Below are positions 24,772-64,000 of a stretch of 64,000 nt of DNA, in pieces. A model generated the notes under the pieces. That model was not told the origin of the DNA. It saw nothing but the letters and a program-made list of their open reading frames with translations, and did not search any database. The stretch is from Macrostomum lignano (lineage: Eukaryota): the NCBI GenBank assembly GCA_002269645.1, contig NIVC01000555.1, positions 121,938-185,937 on the forward strand, in the 5' to 3' direction. A program made the translations under genes and the position numbers. Within the stretch, counting starts at the first letter, position 1, and the number at the start of each line of letters is the position of its first letter.

Positions 24772-26920
24772 CTACGCCGTGTTATACTGAACTTGCAGCA
24801 CTGAGAAGCAGGCATCTAACTTATTCCGTTCTTTCTCCAGTTCTTCAGCATGTCTGTCCAGTTCAAGATAGGTGCTACAGTTTCCTTTCAGTTGGTTTTT
24901 GATATCTTCAACTGAGCTGGCAGTTGGCCAGGAATGATTCCGGTGATCTACGATCTGTGTGGCTGCATGAGACACGGTAGCTCCCGTTCTGTCAGACAGC
25001 TGGTCAGAGTACTTCTCCAATGTCTCCGCTAGTTTGCCATGCACATTCGGCAGATGGGTATTGTAAGTTCTCAGGCAGCCGATGAAGCTGTCTAGATTGC
25101 TTTTCAGTTCTTCTACTCGGCTGAAATAATAATATTTTTCGCAAAATAAGCGAGATTTAAAATGAAAGCTACTAGCAATCAAGCGCGTATTACACAATAG
25201 GCAGGTGTGGCACCGTCAGGTAACCGACAGGTGTGATACTAGACTGCATTCACAAATGACACTTGTGACACAGGGTTGCATGCACTCAAAAAATGGAAAC
25301 ATTTTATCACCGATATGCGCCGAAGTAGGAAAAACAATTTGTCGATAAGTATTGAAAATGTACCACTTACAAGAGCACAGAATATGCACAGAACACTCAA
25401 TCACGCATTTCAAGCAATTTCTTGCACAAGAGTTGCATTCTGCACTAGTTAATCTCATTGTGAAGAAAAACTAAGTAGGCCGAACGGCACTTTGCAAGTT
25501 TTTTTGCAATATCGTATACGCTACTATTACTGAGTTGTCCGGTCTAAAAATTCAAAAAAGATATCTAATTTTCCCTTTGTTTTGTTTTGTTTTTAGGCTT
25601 ATTTTCTGTGCTAGTTCCGCTAAATGAAATGCTATAGCTTTTTTTGTTAAAGTCCACCCAGGCTCTCTATCTAAAAATAAAAGAGAACTGGGAGTTTTTC
25701 ATAAATTTCTATACATTTAATTCATACTACTGAGAAGGTTCGCTAGATAAGTAGGCTGTGCGAAGTTTAATTCTTTTTGTAGTAGGAACCATTATTGGAC
25801 ATTCTGTGTATATTCTGCAGTAAGAACGACAACAGAGTAAATACGCTCGCATGAATGTCGGATGAGGTGAAATAGACTAGTCATCAGCAAATCTGTGATC
25901 GGAGGCAACCTGCACCTATAAAAGTGGACGCATTGGATACATCGCAAGACTTTACAAACGCCAATATTGTGAGCTACATGTATTACAATGAAGCCTTACC
26001 GTCCCTGGGTTATCAGCCTCGTTGCAGTCGAATGAAGATTCGCTGAAGAAGCTGCTATATTATTCTCAACGCGCTGTATGGCTCTAGCGTCCGAAGTTTC
26101 TAGGCGGCTGGATTCTATCAGACGTTGGGCCACTTCGCGACACTGCTGAGTCTCGTTTTTCTCTAAAGTGAGTGCCTCCGACACGTGCAGTTTAATGCTG
26201 GTGATGGCATTGCCTAGCTCAGATGAGTGGTGTTCCAAACTTCCGGCTGCCATCAAGCGGGTCACCGTGCCATCAGTATCGTTCAGCATCTGAATCCGTC
26301 TGATCTTGTGATCCAGATCGGTCCTTAGATCAGTCAGTTCTCCGATGAGATAATCGATTTTTTTCAAAACGGCTCTGCTGTTTTTGATGCGGTTAAGATG
26401 ACTGTGCAAACTTGTAACAGAAAAATATTCATTCTGATCTGCCAATGTATCGGAAAGTGATTGAAGCCGAGTTCGAATTGTGATGCATTTGTCCAGCAGA
26501 TGTAACTGAATAGCATTTAATCTTCCCAGGCACAATCTGAACGTGCGGAGTGCTTCAATAGCCAGGTCAAGCTGACTACGCAGCTCATCAAATGCATCGA
26601 TCCTAAAACAACCTTTGTTCTGACGGCAGTACCAGGATACTGTCGACTAAATTCATCGAGCTCAGAGGAATAGCAAATTCCTCGATCTTTTTGGACCAGT
26701 GTCGTACGTTAGACCACTCGAAATTCGCTTGGTGTCGTTCTTGAGTGGTTAAACCAGGAGATCTAGACAGAATATAGGCGACAGACTCACACAGTTGGGT
26801 CTCTTGCTCCACCAGTCCATAAACATCAGAGAGCTTTTTGAAAAGCTGCAAGCTAATCCGGCTAGCATCAGACTCAGCAGCGGCTACCAGCTGAGCTGGA
26901 GTGTCCACCTGGGATGCCAT
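24772..26920 (-). CDS. Two-exon helical/coiled-coil protein of unknown function, 422 aa after one homopolymer correction
   Basis: ORFs 26603..26920 and 25996..26535 fuse (EQRLFRIDAFDELRSQL) if one base is removed from aaaa 26605-26608. Donor CG|gtaagg after 26000 and acceptor ttattatttcag| before 25120 are both phase 2, joining ORF 24772..25197. Confidence 0.65.
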
Positions 26921-28190
26921 TGCTTTGCTTTTAGAAATACTTGCTTAAGCTATACAGGTTTCTTCACAAAATGACATACAACAAAGTTAACTGTTAGCTA
27001 TAGCTACAAGTAATAGGAATTACGAGTTTTTTGTATGTGACAATCAAAACAATAATTTCTATTGCTTATATAGATTGCTTAGTTAAATAAGGAACAAAAT
27101 ACTTGTACGTTCGAGTTAGCTACTCACGAAACAAGTGTATTGCATATGTACGTTTTTCACAGCAGTCATTATTTCACAAACTTATTTCTCGCTAATGCAA
27201 AGTTAAGAGGAGGTGAATAGATATTACTGTACAAGCATAAAAGGCGGGAGTGCAGTCACGTGATGAAATGCGTACTTACATATAGGGGTTAACTGTTCAT
27301 GGGGATCGAAACAACTTTGGAACAATGGCCAAAACTAATAGTACTCTTTAGCTTCTTGAGGCTAGCTATAACTGCTTCTACATGTATTCAAGAGACTATA
27401 TTTCAGGAAAGTTTTATATTTTCTCTATGCACACTATATAGTGGCATGGCTAGCGTAAACAGGGTTCGGCAATAGCAGTCAGCACAAAGAAAGAAGAGGC
27501 CAAGCACTTTACTTTTAGTGGCGCCAAAAAGAATTTCAGGATTAAACGCACCATGTATCGCATAGTGTGCATAGTGTACAGTGTTCTATATAGGATCATC
27601 AGTACAATACAGCATGAGGCACTGGTACAACATACTTCACTCGTTGATATGGAGTGACCTTCCCCTAAGTGAAGAAAATTTTACTGAAAATTGTACATGT
27701 AGATGTACGCTTTAGTTGTGCAACAAGAAACGAAACAGCCAGAAAATTCTGATGGCCTGTCCGTGAAAAACCGCGCTTACTAGGAACTTGCCACAACTGC
27801 GAGTAAGAATTGACATTAATGCATTACATATTATAGCCCATTTCATACTTTATTTTGAGTTCAGCTGTTGAATGATATTAAAATGCATCGATCCAGTGAT
27901 AGAGTGATCGATGTATCGATTTGAAATGAGTTAACAACAGCTATACCAGCCCACAGCACAACAACAGCAGTACTTTAAGGATTCTCTTATATACAAGATT
28001 CCATTATCTGTCCCCTTAAACCATATGAAAGAAACCAGTTTAAGGCAGAGAAAAAGCCAAAATTTTTCACTTGAGGGGCTCCAGCACCAGACATCATTGC
28101 AGTTTTAAAAAAAAATTTCGAGTTGTTTTTGCATTTCATCTTAAGCGTATAGCTGGTACTGTTACAATTCAAGTGCAGTCTGTATGCAAA

Positions 28191-28232
28191 GGAAACTCCG
28201 TGAAATTTCCACGAAAAATCCGTGAAAAACCC
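28191..28232 (+). promoter_or_regulatory. Four Rel/kB-like 9-mers at exact 11-bp period upstream of the LRAT-like gene
   Basis: GGAAACTCC 28191, GAAATTTCC 28202, GAAAAATCC 28213, GAAAAACCC 28224. Function inferred. Confidence 0.4.
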
Positions 28233-28334
28233 AGAAATTTATTTATTTTGTGATTTAGTAGTGCGTCCTATAAAAGTTTCTTTACTAATCTTGTTTTCTC
28301 TTGTTGCGCTCGTTGCTTTTGCCAAAGACCGTAG

Positions 28335-28858
28335 AAAAAAGGTGCGTCGGATTCACAAACGGATATACTGACTACAAACCATGCGACTACGAAGAGGCGC
28401 TGAAAAATTTAAAACCAGGATCCAGTGTAAGTTTCAACAGAGGCAGTGTATATCACTTCGCAATTTACATGGGAATGGAAGATAAACCAGACGGTACAAG
28501 CTTTCCTGCTATCTGGCATTACTACGGTCCTGTTGATAACATGAGAATTCGAATAGACGACTTTCGCGACGTTATTCAAGGCTGCACTATACGCGTTTAT
28601 CGCTGCAACTGTTCCGAATCAAAAAGGTCTGATGTCATACGAAGATGTAAGAGTAGACTCGGAGAAGGCGGCTACAATGCAGTGTCGAACAATTGTGAGC
28701 ACATTGTCCGCTGGGCTATAAATGGTGAAAGCGTCAGCTATCAATCGCTCGCAACATTTATTCCGGTCACAATGCCATTTCAACTGGTTCGCCTATCTTT
28801 TGGGTCTCTATTTGGGGGAGGTTCCTCTGGATCTTCGTCAAGCTGTGTATGCTCTTGA
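28335..28858 (+). CDS. LRAT/PLAAT (H-box/NC, permuted NlpC/P60) family acyltransferase/phospholipase with C-terminal CaaX; 5' end unresolved
   Basis: PGSSVSFNRGSVYHFAIYMG (His), AIWHY (second His), GGYNAVSNNCEHIVRW (NCEH); ends SSSSCVCS-stop. No in-frame ATG before the first His; candidate branch point tactaat at ~28283 and acceptor tag at 28334. Confidence 0.85.
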
Positions 28859-62700: not shown

Positions 62701-63229
62701 CAGACAGACAGACAGACAGACAGACAGACAGACAGACAAACAGACAGACAGACAGACAGACACACAGACAGACACACAGACAGACAGACAGACAGACAGA
62801 CACACAGACAGACAGACAGACAGACAGACAGACACACAGACAGACAGACAGACAGACAGACAGACAGACACTAAGACACACAGACAGACAGACAGACAGA
62901 CAGACAGACAGACAGACAGACAGACAGACAGACAGACAGACAGACAGACAGACAGACAGACAGACAGACAGACAGACAGACAGACAGACAGACAGACAGA
63001 CAGACAGACAGACAGACAGACAGACAGACAGACAGACAGACAGACAGACAGACAGACACGCAGACAGACAGACAGACAGACAGACAGACAGACAGACAGA
63101 CAGACAGACAGACAGACAGACAGACACGCAGACAGACACGCAGACAGACAGACAGACAGACAGACAGACAGACAGACAGACAGACAGATAGACAGACAGA
63201 CAGACAGACAGACAGACAGACAGACAGAC
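62701..63229. repeat. (GACA)n microsatellite, about three times longer than the paralogous 46575-46755
   Basis: Direct reading. Confidence 0.97.
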
Positions 63230-63406
63230 GACACCATACAAATATGCAAACGACTTTTATGTAGTCTCTGAGTGTACTTCAGTGTATTGTTGTGTAGAGT
63301 AGTGTACTATAGTTGAGCAGTAATGTTTAGTACAATGTTCTGTATAAGCAATAATTGGAAATAAAAGTACGCGGTGATTGTTCAATATTAAATAGACTAG
63401 ATTGAA

Positions 63407-63649
63407 TCAGTCAGGGCTTGAAAAGGTTGGCAATATCCAGGCCACACACGAGACACACTCAATATCCAAGCAGATGTGGATGCAGCAGCAGACATTTTCC
63501 AGAGTCTCCATCTTGCTCGTCTCTGCTTTTGTGTCCTCCACTGAAGTTGCAATAATTTTCTTCCGATCTGACGAGCCTGCAGGCTGATCTAGCGTTGCGT
63601 CATGAGGTGCTTCGAAGACCGCCTTGTTCATGTCTTTCGAGTTTTTCAT
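63407..63649 (-). CDS. CYSTM-like small protein, copy B of 46937 with altered ends (80 aa from second ATG)
   Basis: First ATG is 2 nt out of frame; a net +8-nt change turns the tail CLACLECGLDIANLFKP into CLDIECVSCVAWILPTFSSPD. Confidence 0.5.
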   Translation of the reverse strand: MKNSKDMNKAVFEAPHDATLDQPAGSSDRKKIIATSVEDTKAETSKMETLENVCCCIHICLDIECVSCVAWILPTFSSPD

Positions 63650-64000
63650 TTCAGTAGCTTTGCAGCGTCTCGGGTGAGAATGCCATTTATAGACTCTTCC
63701 CAATCGTCAGTTTAAATGTATTCACAACGCGAAGTTGCCACACTTTGCCAGTACAGCAAGCCAGGTCGTGTACATACATGTAGTAGAGCTTATCACTAGG
63801 CATTATAGATAAGTTTTGTGACTATTTTTTGGCGTACGTTGGTGACACTTCGGCTAAAAATACTTTGAATGAGCCAAGCCATTTATTTCGGCCATGATAA
63901 TAAACATACTTTTAAAAAAGCAACTTTTTTGCTGAAAGCAAAATTTGCACTCTCGTTCATGCATGCTGAATTAATATGCCGTACGGAGCGCATGATATGC

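Follow-up and report, generated by a model that had tools for sequence, protein, structure and literature searches.

The closest described counterparts of the proteins considered here are probably the ClyA/Hbl/Nhe-type alpha-pore-forming toxins, among which HblL1 has a 'tongue' that is Gly/Ala-rich, with a central proline and two predicted transmembrane segments (PMC8065917). The hemolysin-E-like genes of Drosophila form a ClyA-like family that is immune-induced and tandemly expanded, and the DUF677 proteins of plants are membrane proteins whose function is unclear. We examined 39 kb of Macrostomum lignano contig NIVC01000555.1 (~146.7–185.9 kb), lying within a 64,000-nucleotide stretch of that contig (the 'window', whose positions are used below). 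These 39 kb are the central portion of a larger, repeat-rich segment that has been duplicated recently and repeatedly. We consider it fairly probable (roughly 60%) that the locus is a lineage-specific segmental duplication undergoing birth and death, which houses a family of probably membrane-inserting proteins and in which most of the gene copies within the window are decaying.

A within-window duplication map revealed a module copied en bloc, with copies 81–98% identical (Table 1). Its order is a WSC-PAN unit, a helical-hairpin gene, opposite-strand Cys-tail genes, helD and another helical-hairpin gene. At least three copies of the module lie on the contig, with the array running on for 17.5 kb past the window (L002), and a homeologous contig (L004) carries a simpler form. 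An earlier note on this DNA had proposed that three genes were duplicated together as a module with birth-and-death disablement, which copies A, B and C and their mapped lesions bear out; the duplicate copy, amounting to ~11 kb of the 39 kb, was omitted there. The 'unrelated families' noted at this locus stand side by side because they were copied en bloc, and not through any demonstrable shared regulation. Synteny with the homeologous contig extends to the module but not to WSC-PAN or helD, which are missing there, and the linkage of these families is therefore kept only in part. The product of helA, P0001, is the sole annotated gene between 33.7 and 54.5 kb; a missing gene model says little, because annotation is sparse here and intact copies such as cys76 copy A are also unannotated.

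Table 1. Features of the analysed stretch (window positions unless a locus is given)
Feature	Position	Strand	Remarks
Module copy A	38738-40144 + 43330-47479		
Module copy B	50208-54772		partial
Module copy C	57140-63959		
helA	43703-44530	+	intact 275-aa ORF (P0001), annotated gene
helB	50580-51480	+	hairpin-bearing copy
helC	58974-59802	+	hairpin deletion and frameshift
helD	48679-49482	+	orphan 267-aa ORF, all-helical
helD, second copy	L002 8179-8982		95.5% protein identity
WSC-PAN unit, copy A	38738-40144	+	
WSC exon, copy A	39106-39480	+	broken by 22-bp deletion at ~39277
PAN-like exon, copy A	39611-39883	+	open
WSC-PAN unit, copy C	57140-58597	+	
WSC exon, copy C	57507-58007	+	open; Pfam E = 1e-13
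PAN-like exon, copy C	58038-58220	+	terminated by CAG to TAG nonsense codon, 58221-58223
cys86	35344-35601	-	Cys-tail gene (...ENACACLIICMCCMECCQFFLDIFKDCSN)
cys76 copy A	46943-47170	-	intact (...ENVCCCIHICLACLECGLDIANLFKP)
cys76 copy C	63416-63649	-	
30-aa Cys-tail fragment	54240-54329	-	cys86-related (GGCSCLSYFCIGCLDCCQLVLELFR); no Met
Twin of 30-aa fragment	62273-62362	-	
142-aa ORF	30403-30831	-	(QQPQE)n repeats; C-terminal tail CCCLCCCFWQVFKVIVTICW
Doubtful Cys-tail locus	27934-28104	-	stop-bounded 57 aa, end ...KYCCCCAVGWYSCC; no Met; no Pfam match
LRAT/PLAAT-type (NlpC/P60) domain ORF	28289-28858	+	Pfam LRAT; end ...SSSSCVCS (stop)
Helical ORF1 of '422-aa protein'	26606-26944	-	Met at 26920; six-frame translation
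Helical ORF2 of '422-aa protein'	25999-26646	-	six-frame translation
Helical ORF3 of '422-aa protein'	24775-25215	-	six-frame translation
LINE (non-LTR retrotransposon) insertion	40144-43330	+	3.2 kb; splits module copy A
LINE RT ORF	41211-42413	+	RVT_1 E = 1.4e-8
LINE zf-RVT-like ORF	42513-42980	+	
Minisatellite	32001-32451		15/45/91-bp units (GGACWTTTCCCCTCC); inverted partner 32851-32941
21-bp satellite	37815-38555		35 copies; adjoins module copy A on its upstream side

The earlier note counted four helical paralogs, one of them with a hydrophobic hairpin. Three (helA, helB and helC; 60–88% amino acid identity) are true paralogs, whereas the likeness of helD to the family is confined to its last ~40 residues; the hairpin (34 codons, 51136–51237) is indeed retained in the window by helB alone. 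An in-frame 102-nt deletion, common to helA, helC and one further copy beyond the window, takes out most of the hairpin (in helA the junction lies at 44254/44255). The helB copy, 77–87% identical to the intact protein P0002, carries a +1 frameshift in an A5 run (51086–51090) and a premature TAA TAG at ~51418–51423; helC carries a +1 frameshift in an A7 run (59250–59256), and both of its lesions are also found at L002 1593–2502. All three window copies of the family are compromised. Recent helical copies gave dN/dS ratios of 0.87–1.35 (0.94–1.35 for helA against its paralogs), without significant departure from 1, whereas P0002 and P0004 gave 0.42 (p = 6e-8) and purifying values were likewise obtained for helD and cys76. 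Ratios near 1 combined with these lesions are better fitted by decay than by an arms race.

The helB and helC frameshifts, each a single extra A in a homopolymer run, may be sequencing errors if the assembly is a long-read one, and haplotypes or homeologs joined in error could likewise account for some 'tandem copies'. M. lignano has been characterised as a hidden polyploid (PMC10468722), and the divergence of the copies (dS ~0.04–0.07) resembles that of the homeolog pair P0003/P0004 (0.058). We nevertheless regard a partial assembly artefact as quite unlikely: each of three lesions (the hairpin deletion, the A7 frameshift and the PAN-like exon's TAG codon) recurs in a pair of copies that were assembled separately and have diverged at other sites, and the 22-bp, 8-bp and 102-nt indels are not of the homopolymer-error type. 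The flanks of the copies also differ, with the LINE in copy A alone and WSC-PAN missing from copy B.

The intact members of the hairpin family (P0002, P0003 and P0004) all lie beyond the window, and with only eight representatives among 1.84 billion the family appears to be lineage-restricted. An AF2 model (pLDDT 80.8, pTM 0.72) has helices at residues 11–50, 57–104, 110–179 and 217–292, with the hairpin (175–213) modelled at low confidence (pLDDT ~30). The intact members are predicted to fold as four long helices arranged in a rod, with a hydrophobic, Gly/Ala-rich hairpin of 40 residues and a central proline separating helix 3 from the return helix. This predicted architecture is the same as that of the ClyA/Hbl/Nhe-type toxins, with HblL1 the closest, and is a new result.

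Three routes converge weakly on the ClyA/Hbl superfamily. A family profile searched against 177,635 PDB sequences gave a single match below 1e-3, to HblL1 (7nmq; E = 4.4e-7), with an alignment spanning the hairpin and the next helix; this score was equalled by 1 of 500 shuffles and rests largely on the compositionally biased hairpin, with shuffles of one half of the fragment equalling the real score in 2–3% of trials. Among the best 40 Foldseek matches, 17 were ClyA, AhlB, HblL1 or AhlC, with E-values of 0.02–0.24 and TM-scores of 0.31–0.43, a range also reached by F-BAR domains and designed helical bundles. In NCBIfam, XaxA matched three of nine members (best 2.3e-4) and MakA and MakE were also matched, all below threshold; no ClyA-family model reached its curated threshold. 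The membrane-targeting character claimed in the earlier note holds to the extent that the profile, the AF2 model and Foldseek make the hairpin family look membrane-active; the Pfam ApoL model found no match in the family, and the CYSTM assignment fails (below).

A possible, if doubtful, alternative places these proteins on internal membranes, as coiled-coil proteins that are monotopic or anchored by their hairpin, in the manner of ApoL, plant DUF677/AT14A and the hairpin proteins of lipid droplets and the ER. Their likeness to ClyA/Hbl would then be convergent, a matter of long helices and a Gly/Ala-rich hydrophobic segment. No family member has a signal peptide, two distant relatives end in CaaX-like motifs (CSVL in P0014, CAIL in P0015), and P0004 falls exactly at the Pfam cutoff for DUF677; the sub-threshold ClyA-family matches and the compositional share of the HblL1 score point the same way. 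Pore formation is favored by the position of the hairpin, which is topologically the same in both groups (past the third long helix and ahead of the return helix), by the agreement of three independent methods on one superfamily, and by the failure of the ApoL model to match; moreover, HblL1 stood alone below 1e-3 in a PDB set that holds many Gly/Ala-rich membrane proteins. For a membrane-inserting family, our preferred reading, a soluble or peripheral helical bundle would swing its hairpin into the lipid bilayer and then oligomerise. Because of the missing signal peptides and the CaaX-like ends of distant relatives, the target membrane would probably be approached from the cytosolic side or via unconventional release.

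Decay does not extend to every gene. The helD ORF is itself without annotation and has no homolog among 5.8 billion proteins; judged from its two copies (dN/dS 0.27, p = 0.003) it is under purifying selection, and by the same measure so is cys76 (0.12, Fisher p = 0.0006). The Cys-rich tails reported earlier at six loci are real, but we found seven, all on the minus strand. None of the Cys-tail proteins matches Pfam CYSTM even at E ≤ 10, and the 142-aa ORF, whose (QQPQE)n repeat is a 15-bp tandem array (30565–30790), is CYSTM-like in architecture only. The cys86 gene shares 90.7% identity with an 86-aa gene annotated on the homeologous contig (L004 1027–1287; dN/dS 0.63, few changes), and cys76 copy A shares 94.7% with the 76/89-aa genes annotated in L002, L003 and L004. 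The fragment at 54240–54329 is a terminal exon or relic, because it has no Met; in cys76 copy C, an 8-bp insertion within 63449–63473, inside the Cys tail, alters the C-terminus.

That insertion, the lesions in helB, helC and both WSC-PAN copies, the hairpin deletion in helA, the neutral evolution of recent helical copies, the LINE, satellites and microsatellites, and the annotation of P0001 only over 33.7–54.5 kb would all suit a functionless graveyard, made up of nothing but relics and transposon-derived sequence from 24.8 to 64 kb, with ORFs that are open by chance. Purifying selection between copies of helD and of cys76, the annotated near-identical counterparts of cys86 and cys76 elsewhere and the annotated status of P0001 make this unlikely.

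The gene inventory of the earlier note is mostly real; not confirmed were the ShKT exon (a ShKT-like six-Cys pattern is absent from every frame), CYSTM membership and the kB-like or any other shared promoter motif. Two WSC exons are present as described, but their PAN partners are weak (PAN_4 E = 0.039, under the Pfam cutoff). Both window WSC-PAN copies are disrupted, the nonsense codon of copy C recurs in the L002 copy, and a search for a signal-peptide exon for the window copies found none. The proposed LRAT/PLAAT enzyme has its LRAT domain (E = 7.2e-13; 49.3 bits versus a cutoff of 24.3) and the His/His/Cys (NCEH) residues, but the supposed CaaX box is CVCS, and the closest paralog, P0005 (45% identity), extends 140 aa beyond it. 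This ORF is absent from the predicted-protein database and has no ATG of its own, AGG occupying the position of the P0005 ATG (28336–28345, AAAAGGTGC); it could start from an AUG-ending spliced leader. The '422-aa helical protein' corresponds to existing helical ORFs, which gave no Pfam or PDB match and no family relation. Its intron 2 is canonical (GT..AG, donor ~26000, acceptor ~25122), but the overlapping ORF1 and ORF2 are not in the same frame, and a single protein therefore requires a putative 49–76-nt intron or is otherwise frameshifted.

These genes had been interpreted as a co-regulated defence/stress island, its lectin-type WSC/PAN sensors, PLAAT-type phospholipase, tail-anchored CYSTM proteins and ApoL-like pore formers being turned on jointly through a kB-like promoter code. 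Matches to the canonical kB consensus are no more frequent than chance (3 versus 2.9 expected) and come from one site, which lies inside the LINE; kB-like GGGACTTT matches fall only in the minisatellite (32001–32941), GGGACTTTCC-like matches are restricted to 32001–32451, and no 8–10-mers are shared beyond shuffles upstream of eight non-paralogous genes. Without a common upstream motif, and with damaged WSC-PAN copies, three of three hairpin copies compromised, failed CYSTM and ShKT assignments, an LRAT ORF lacking an ATG, a homeologous locus devoid of WSC-PAN and helD, and a pattern of decay rather than arms race, a co-regulated sensor-effector defence locus is unsupported and very unlikely. 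Some features would agree with it, namely the membrane-active look of the hairpin family, the divergent cys76/hairpin-gene pair kept at four loci, and the dN/dS near 1 and copy-number turnover that immune effector families likewise show. By analogy with the hemolysin-E-like genes of Drosophila, a role in defence is possible for the hairpin family.

Mini- and microsatellites total ~4 kb of the stretch, and neither these nor the LINE had been mentioned in the earlier note. In copy C, which has no LINE, 57140–58597 abuts 58592.

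The region from 24772 to 64000 is best described as a decaying, lineage-specific gene module that has been duplicated en bloc. An exact-match look-up placed the helical gene helA at positions 165640-166467 of NIVC01000555.1 (GCA_002269645.1; the window spans ∼121.9-185.9 kb of this contig), with 100% identity to a predicted protein whose only relatives among 5.8 billion proteins were three hypothetical proteins, all from Macrostomum lignano. Self-comparison of the window resolved three copies of the module, A to C, the first of which is split by a 3.2-kb LINE; these and the other features of the region and its related loci are collected in the table.

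Table. Features of the window and of related loci (window positions unless a locus is named)
Feature	Coordinates	Strand	Detail
MAM gene	700-8000	-	several MAM domains, multi-exon; ORF 1140-2483, MAM E=9e-69
Satellite, 21-bp unit	10834-16316		5.5 kb, AT-rich, GC 0.35; upstream of the region
RhoGAP ORF	21616-23049	+	477 aa, GC-rich, single-exon; E=3.5e-18; no relation to cluster
Minisatellite, 20-bp unit	23889-24509		distinct from the 10834-16316 satellite
LRAT domain	28289-28858		Pfam E=7.2e-13, above cutoff
cys142	30403-30831	-	Cys-tail gene
GC-rich block	31310-33150		159-aa ORF
Minisatellite, 15/45/91-bp	32001-32451		within GC-rich block
Inverted short array	32851-32941		within GC-rich block
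Repeated segment	33847-34010		80% identity to 2635-2794
Module copy A	38738-40144 and 43330-47479
WSC exon, copy A	39106-39480		damaged
PAN-like exon	39611-39883
Reverse transcriptase	41211-42413		Pfam-confirmed
helA	43703-44530	+	P0001
42-bp repeat	44408-44496		helA-type coiled coil
Cys-rich hydrophobic stretch	44631-44765	+	directly 3' of helA
(CAGA)n	46575-46759		46 units
helD	48679-49482		orphan helical ORF
Module copy B	50208-54772		partial, without WSC-PAN; 81-98% identity
helB	50580-51480
A5 run	51086-51090		extra A, helB
(CAGA)n	54877-55382		127 units
67-bp tandem repeat	56702-57140		6.6 copies; left edge of copy C
Module copy C	57140-63959		92-96% identity to copy A
WSC exon, copy C	57507-58007		open; 51.5 bits (cutoff 27.8), E=1e-13
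PAN-like exon	58038-58220
helC	58974-59802
A7 run	59250-59256		extra A, helC and L002_1593
42-bp repeat	59680-59768		helA-type coiled coil
Cys-rich hydrophobic stretch	59883-60038	+	directly 3' of helC
(CAGA)n	62701-63233		133 units
42-bp repeat	L002 ∼2390-2500		helA-type coiled coil
42-bp repeat	L004 ∼4500-4640		helA-type coiled coil
83-aa TM gene	L002 15395-15646	-	annotated
83-aa TM gene	L003 13210-13461	-	annotated
83-aa TM gene	L004 13125-13376	-	annotated
Hairpin-less paralog, 272 aa	L005 2826-3644
Hairpin-bearing member, 345 aa	L005 4001-5038

The earlier note's claim that several of these genes had been duplicated together was right and understated. The right boundary of the region is merely the end of the window, and the array runs a further 17.5 kb along the contig (locus L002), in the order WSC-PAN, a helC-like copy, the small Cys-tail gene cys76, a second helD, then an intact hairpin gene (P0002), a gene for an 83-aa transmembrane (TM) protein and a C2H2 zinc-finger gene. 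The distal part of the array, carrying the intact hairpin gene P0004, lies reversed at L003, a locus of this contig ∼65 kb upstream of the window, and the homeologous contig NIVC01000230.1 (L004) has a simpler arrangement of cys86 (a second Cys-tail gene), a satellite, an intact hairpin gene, cys76, the hairpin gene P0003, the TM gene and the zinc-finger gene. Linkage across loci is conserved for one pair of genes: cys76 on the minus strand and a hairpin gene on the plus strand are kept together at L002, L003, L004 and in the window, with cys86 linked to them as well on L004. WSC-PAN and helD are both absent from L004, and the LRAT ORF, the 422-aa ORFs and cys142 were not seen at the loci compared outside the window (L002, L003 and L004). 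Unrelated genes therefore stand side by side because the module was duplicated en bloc.

Two copies of the distal block (hairpin gene, TM gene and zinc-finger gene) lie on either side of the window region, inverted relative to each other (L003, 46.4-67.3 kb; L002, 203.4-224.3 kb). Either a large segment has been duplicated in inverted form, with ∼150 kb between the copies, or sequences of a hidden polyploid have been mis-joined. The 83-aa single-TM protein (MSAHFELDEL...), which has no Pfam match, is encoded 2-4.5 kb downstream of an intact hairpin gene in every case and does not occur in the window; its L002 and L003 versions are identical. Each module copy carries a (CAGA)n microsatellite at the matching relative place, with greatly differing lengths, and (CAGA)n/CLSV-coding microsatellites also lie within introns of the MAM gene. 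The 21-bp satellite gives rise to very long spurious ORFs in several frames, and the block at 31310-33150, whose 159-aa ORF has no Pfam match, looks like a mobile-element fragment. Rfam and tRNA scans of the full window returned no matches.

Decay of the module was evident from a nucleotide alignment of eight family genes, in which an in-frame 102-nt deletion, which removes 34 hairpin codons and has its junction at 44254|44255 in helA, is common to helA, helC and a family gene of L002 (L002_1593), the last two of which also have the extra A in their A7 run in common. The paralog helB retains its hairpin and carries, besides its extra A, a premature TAA TAG at ∼51418-51423. Beyond the helical genes, the WSC exon of copy A has lost 22 bp at ∼39277, a CAG-to-TAG change in the PAN exon, at 58221-58223 in copy C, is common to copy C and the L002 copy, and the copy C version of cys76 has an 8-bp insertion within its Cys tail, between 63449 and 63473. 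Sequencing error could account for the two homopolymer frameshifts (helB A5 and helC A7) but not for the remaining lesions, several of which are common to separately assembled copies. Estimates of dN/dS (Nei-Gojobori, with Fisher tests for significance) were 0.27 for helD against its L002 copy (p 0.003), 0.12 for cys76 (p 0.0006) and 0.42 for the older pair of intact hairpin genes, P0002 and P0004 (p 6e-8). The ratio for the homeolog pair P0003 and P0004 was 0.65, and recent helical copies in and around the window gave 0.87-1.35, none of these being significant. The pattern of selection and the lesions together fit birth-and-death decay, as the earlier note had described it, here of recent copies around a constrained core. 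The 42-bp (14-codon) tandem repeat in the C-terminal coiled coil of helA-type genes varies from two to at least four units among paralogs, so that the length of the coiled coil is polymorphic among copies. Annotation was considered as a proxy for expression and dropped, since the intact cys76 of copy A and the gene at L004 3697-4671 are likewise unannotated.

The one feature of wider interest is the helical-hairpin family itself, apparently an undescribed flatworm family with ClyA/Hbl-like architecture whose intact members lie outside the window. Three of the four helical genes first grouped as paralogs (helA, helB and helC) form an alignable family; helD was rejected as a member, as only ∼40 of its C-terminal residues match, and it has no homolog among 5.8 billion proteins and no relative in the PDB. 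Intact members are ∼290-310 aa long, intronless and devoid of a signal peptide, and contain a 43-residue hairpin segment, GYGAAVVGLGAAVATAGVATAPAMFAAGSLTTASVGTAAWTKV, in which Gly and Ala make up 49% of residues and the Kyte-Doolittle mean peaks at 1.68. Only eight proteins were recovered when 1.84 billion cluster representatives were searched with a family profile; the distant members, from transcript-sized contigs and one metagenomic, eukaryote-like contig, retain the same layout. An AlphaFold2 model of P0002 (nine sequences; pLDDT 80.8, pTM 0.72) predicts helices at residues 11-50, 57-104, 110-179 and 217-292, with the hairpin (175-213) modeled at low confidence. We put at roughly three in four the probability that the family is a membrane-inserting helical bundle with a hydrophobic hairpin.

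A CaaX-like box, ...SCVCSVL or ...SCVCAIL, stands at the end of, or within, two of the distant members, P0014 (on transcript contig L006, where no spliced leader is visible) and P0015. The latter is predicted as a chimera of 1171 aa, the N-terminal part of which looks by eye like a PLP-dependent aminotransferase or an enzyme of the 5-aminolevulinate-synthase type. On the metagenomic contig, which is unrelated to those of the flatworm (L005; ENA metagenome scaffold ROBB21-1_..._1844), a hairpin-bearing member directly follows a hairpin-less paralog (BLASTP E=6e-12 across helices 2-3), with an adjoining ankyrin-repeat ORF; this pairing parallels that of the flatworm module.

Three independent comparisons point to the ClyA/Hbl superfamily of alpha-pore-forming toxins (alpha-PFTs). 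When the family profile was run against 177,635 PDB sequences, the single match below 1e-3 was Bacillus cereus HblL1 (7nmq; E=4.4e-7), in an alignment covering the hairpin and the next helix. The aligned fragment scored 25.2 bits in its real order; with both parts shuffled the mean was -4.5 and one of 500 trials reached the real score, which was reached in 2-3% of trials when one part alone was shuffled. Of the top 40 Foldseek hits in the PDB, 17 were ClyA, AhlB, HblL1 or AhlC (E 0.02-0.24, TM 0.31-0.43), with generic helical bundles scoring alongside, and the first structural model gave the same picture. NCBIfam matches were to XaxA (three of nine members, best 2.3e-4), MakA and MakE, all far below the curated cutoffs, and neither the HlyE nor the Bacillus_HBL Pfam model was among the matches listed for family members.

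The likeness to the ClyA/HlyE-Hbl-Nhe-Ahl-Xax/Yax-Mak toxins is one of architecture. The toxins have an elongated bundle of long antiparallel helices, the tail domain of the ClyA/Hbl/Nhe proteins, and such a bundle is predicted for P0002; both place a hydrophobic hairpin, which in the toxins is the tongue of the head, after the third long helix, in P0002 between that helix and the return helix. GYGAAVVGLGAAVATAGVATAPAMFAAGSLTTASVGTAAWTKV aligns to the tongue of HblL1. In its published account (PMC8065917), that tongue is unusually long and rich in Gly and Ala, has a proline at its center and contains two segments predicted to span the membrane; the flatworm hairpin fits this account. Components of bi- and tripartite toxins are encoded by adjacent genes, as are the hairpin-bearing and hairpin-less flatworm paralogs. 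Unlike the bacterial proteins, the flatworm genes are eukaryotic, intronless and without a Sec signal peptide, some distant relatives end in a CaaX-like box, and the family is known from genes and predicted structure; the similarity is at the level of profiles only (E=4e-7 in the PDB) and below every curated family threshold. We consider the case for true homology to the ClyA superfamily to be evenly balanced.

Two other families share parts of this layout. Apolipoprotein L proteins (ApoLs), mostly cytosolic and membrane-active, likewise have a helical N-terminus, a hydrophobic hairpin of helix-loop-helix form and, at the C-terminus, a helix of heptad repeats, and the hairpin had at first been called ApoL-like. 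The Pfam ApoL model gave no match among the matches listed, either for P0002-P0004 at E≤10 (best 25 listed per protein) or for nine members at E≤0.1, and solved ApoL structures were missing from both the fold and the profile matches. Proteins of the plant DUF677 family (AT14A-like membrane proteins) are helical with a central pair of hydrophobic segments, and P0004 scored exactly at the cutoff for this model (PF05055; 29.1 bits, residues 97-305). P0003 reached 15.7 bits, and P0002 and the other six members gave no match, so that only two of nine matched at E≤0.1. In a passage of PMC13471261, DUF677 is characterized as mainly a green-plant family whose biochemical function is not clear.

We infer that intact family members are rods, soluble or peripheral, whose Gly/Ala hairpin enters a bilayer, and that they may oligomerize like ClyA-type toxins. 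The lack of a signal peptide and the CaaX-like ends of relatives suggest that they work at the cytosolic face or are released unconventionally. The conserved head-to-head pair of cys76 and a hairpin gene could share a bidirectional promoter, and the hairpin-less neighbors (helA-type, helD and the 272-aa protein of L005) could be partners or simply the result of decay. The analogous case of Drosophila ananassae makes a role in defence plausible; in this fly, hemolysin-E-like genes are induced by parasitoids and a ClyA-type helical family has likewise expanded in an animal genome. The fly proteins have recognizable hemolysin E domains and are secreted humoral factors shown to be parasitoid-induced, whereas the flatworm family is known from sequence alone.

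A bolder reading, to which we would give long odds, is that the module may constitute an animal-endogenous, multi-component alpha-pore-forming system operating from the cytosolic side, in defence or regulated cell killing: a eukaryotic counterpart of Hbl, Nhe, Ahl and Xax with a hairpin subunit (P0002/P0004 type), a hairpin-less partner (helD or helA type) and a Cys-tail protein, divergently transcribed, as membrane receptor or self-protection factor. The adjacency of hairpin-less and hairpin-bearing genes in L005 and the conserved cys76/hairpin-gene pairing fit such a reading. If the family does belong to the ClyA/Hbl superfamily, it would be the second animal lineage with a bacterial-type alpha-pore-former fold, after the ananassae-group Drosophila, and the flatworm form would be signal-peptide-less and possibly prenylated. 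One could then test in what way animals come by alpha-helical pore formers, through domestication or reinvention, and what protects the producing cell from them; M. lignano is genetically tractable, with RNAi and transgenesis available.

The cluster as a whole had been proposed to be a co-regulated sensor-plus-effector defence locus under a shared kB-like promoter grammar, which was not supported where testable. The kB consensus GGGRNWYYCC gave three matches (2.9 expected), all at one site in the LINE, and GGGNNNNNCC gave 56 (48.7 ± 8.2 expected). Matches to GGGACTTTCC with at most one mismatch numbered five, all in the 15/45-bp minisatellite, which is probably what had looked kB-like, plus one at 16810, outside the region. 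Compared with shuffled controls, there was no excess of shared 8-10-mers in the 600 bp upstream of eight non-paralogous candidates. The gene models Mlig013564, Mlig013860 and Mlig006329 were not found in the literature full text or the M. lignano RNA-seq supplements searched. The cluster is instead an unremarkable outcome of segments being duplicated en bloc and decaying, in a genome that is rich in repeats and recently polyploid, and the co-location of 'immune-sounding' domains is not evidence for a defence island.

Several of those domains were themselves revised. Both WSC exons are real, that of copy A being damaged; the PAN assignment of the adjoining exons fell short (PAN_4 E=0.039, 14.4 bits where the cutoff is 27), their Cys spacing being PAN-like only by eye. 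The ShKT-like exon did not survive: no six-Cys pattern was present in any of six frames from 17.7 to 64 kb (three regex and Cys-density scans). Cys-rich tail loci do exist and number seven rather than six, with the cys76 and cys86 types matching annotated small genes elsewhere in the genome. They resemble CYSTM proteins in being small, low in complexity at the N-terminus and hydrophobic and rich in Cys at the C-terminus (best seen in cys142), but CYSTM membership fell away: at E≤1 to 10, the model matched none of cys76, cys86, cys142, the 54240 fragment and the 27934 segment. The tails of cys76, cys86 and 54240 differ in having a motif of their own (CxC-x5-C-x2-C-x2-C...L-D/E-I/L-F-K/R) and charged residues; the E, D and H in those of cys76 and cys86 make a true TM helix uncertain, and one of the three has a weak MDFI match (E=1e-3). 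The plus-strand Cys-rich stretch downstream of helA and helC (SCLNNFCNWYCICSCCAIVGCINCIYSYLYYCLQCLQY) is conserved and may or may not be coding, and has no Pfam match.

The 422-aa helical protein comprises three ORFs. Its intron 2 is a clean, canonical GT..AG intron, but ORF1 and ORF2 overlap in different frames, which implies either an intron of 49-76 nt or a frameshift; enumeration of splice sites allowed many short introns and no unique model. No relation of these ORFs to the hairpin family or helD was detected, nor any Pfam or PDB match.

The LRAT/PLAAT assignment stood as regards the domain. The ORF, which is absent from the predicted proteins, has the catalytic His/His/Cys residues (NCEH) and a hydrophobic stretch after the domain, as in PLAAT/HRASLS-LRAT (NlpC/P60) enzymes, and its YHFAIY, WHYYG and NNCEHIV segments align with its closest paralog, P0005 (45% identity), and with P0007. 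It differs from P0005 in having AGG at the position of the paralog's ATG, and it lacks an in-frame ATG ahead of the catalytic His. A start codon could be provided by trans-splicing at CCAAAG|ACC, since the spliced leader of M. lignano has ...TTGCATG at its end (PMC8629364); the AUG would be donated at 28328|28329. The CaaX assignment stood in part: the terminal CVCS is literal and a putative CaaX box, but is not conserved in P0005, which continues ∼140 aa past the equivalent position. The end of the window ORF, ...SSCVCS, resembles the CaaX-like box of P0014 and P0015.
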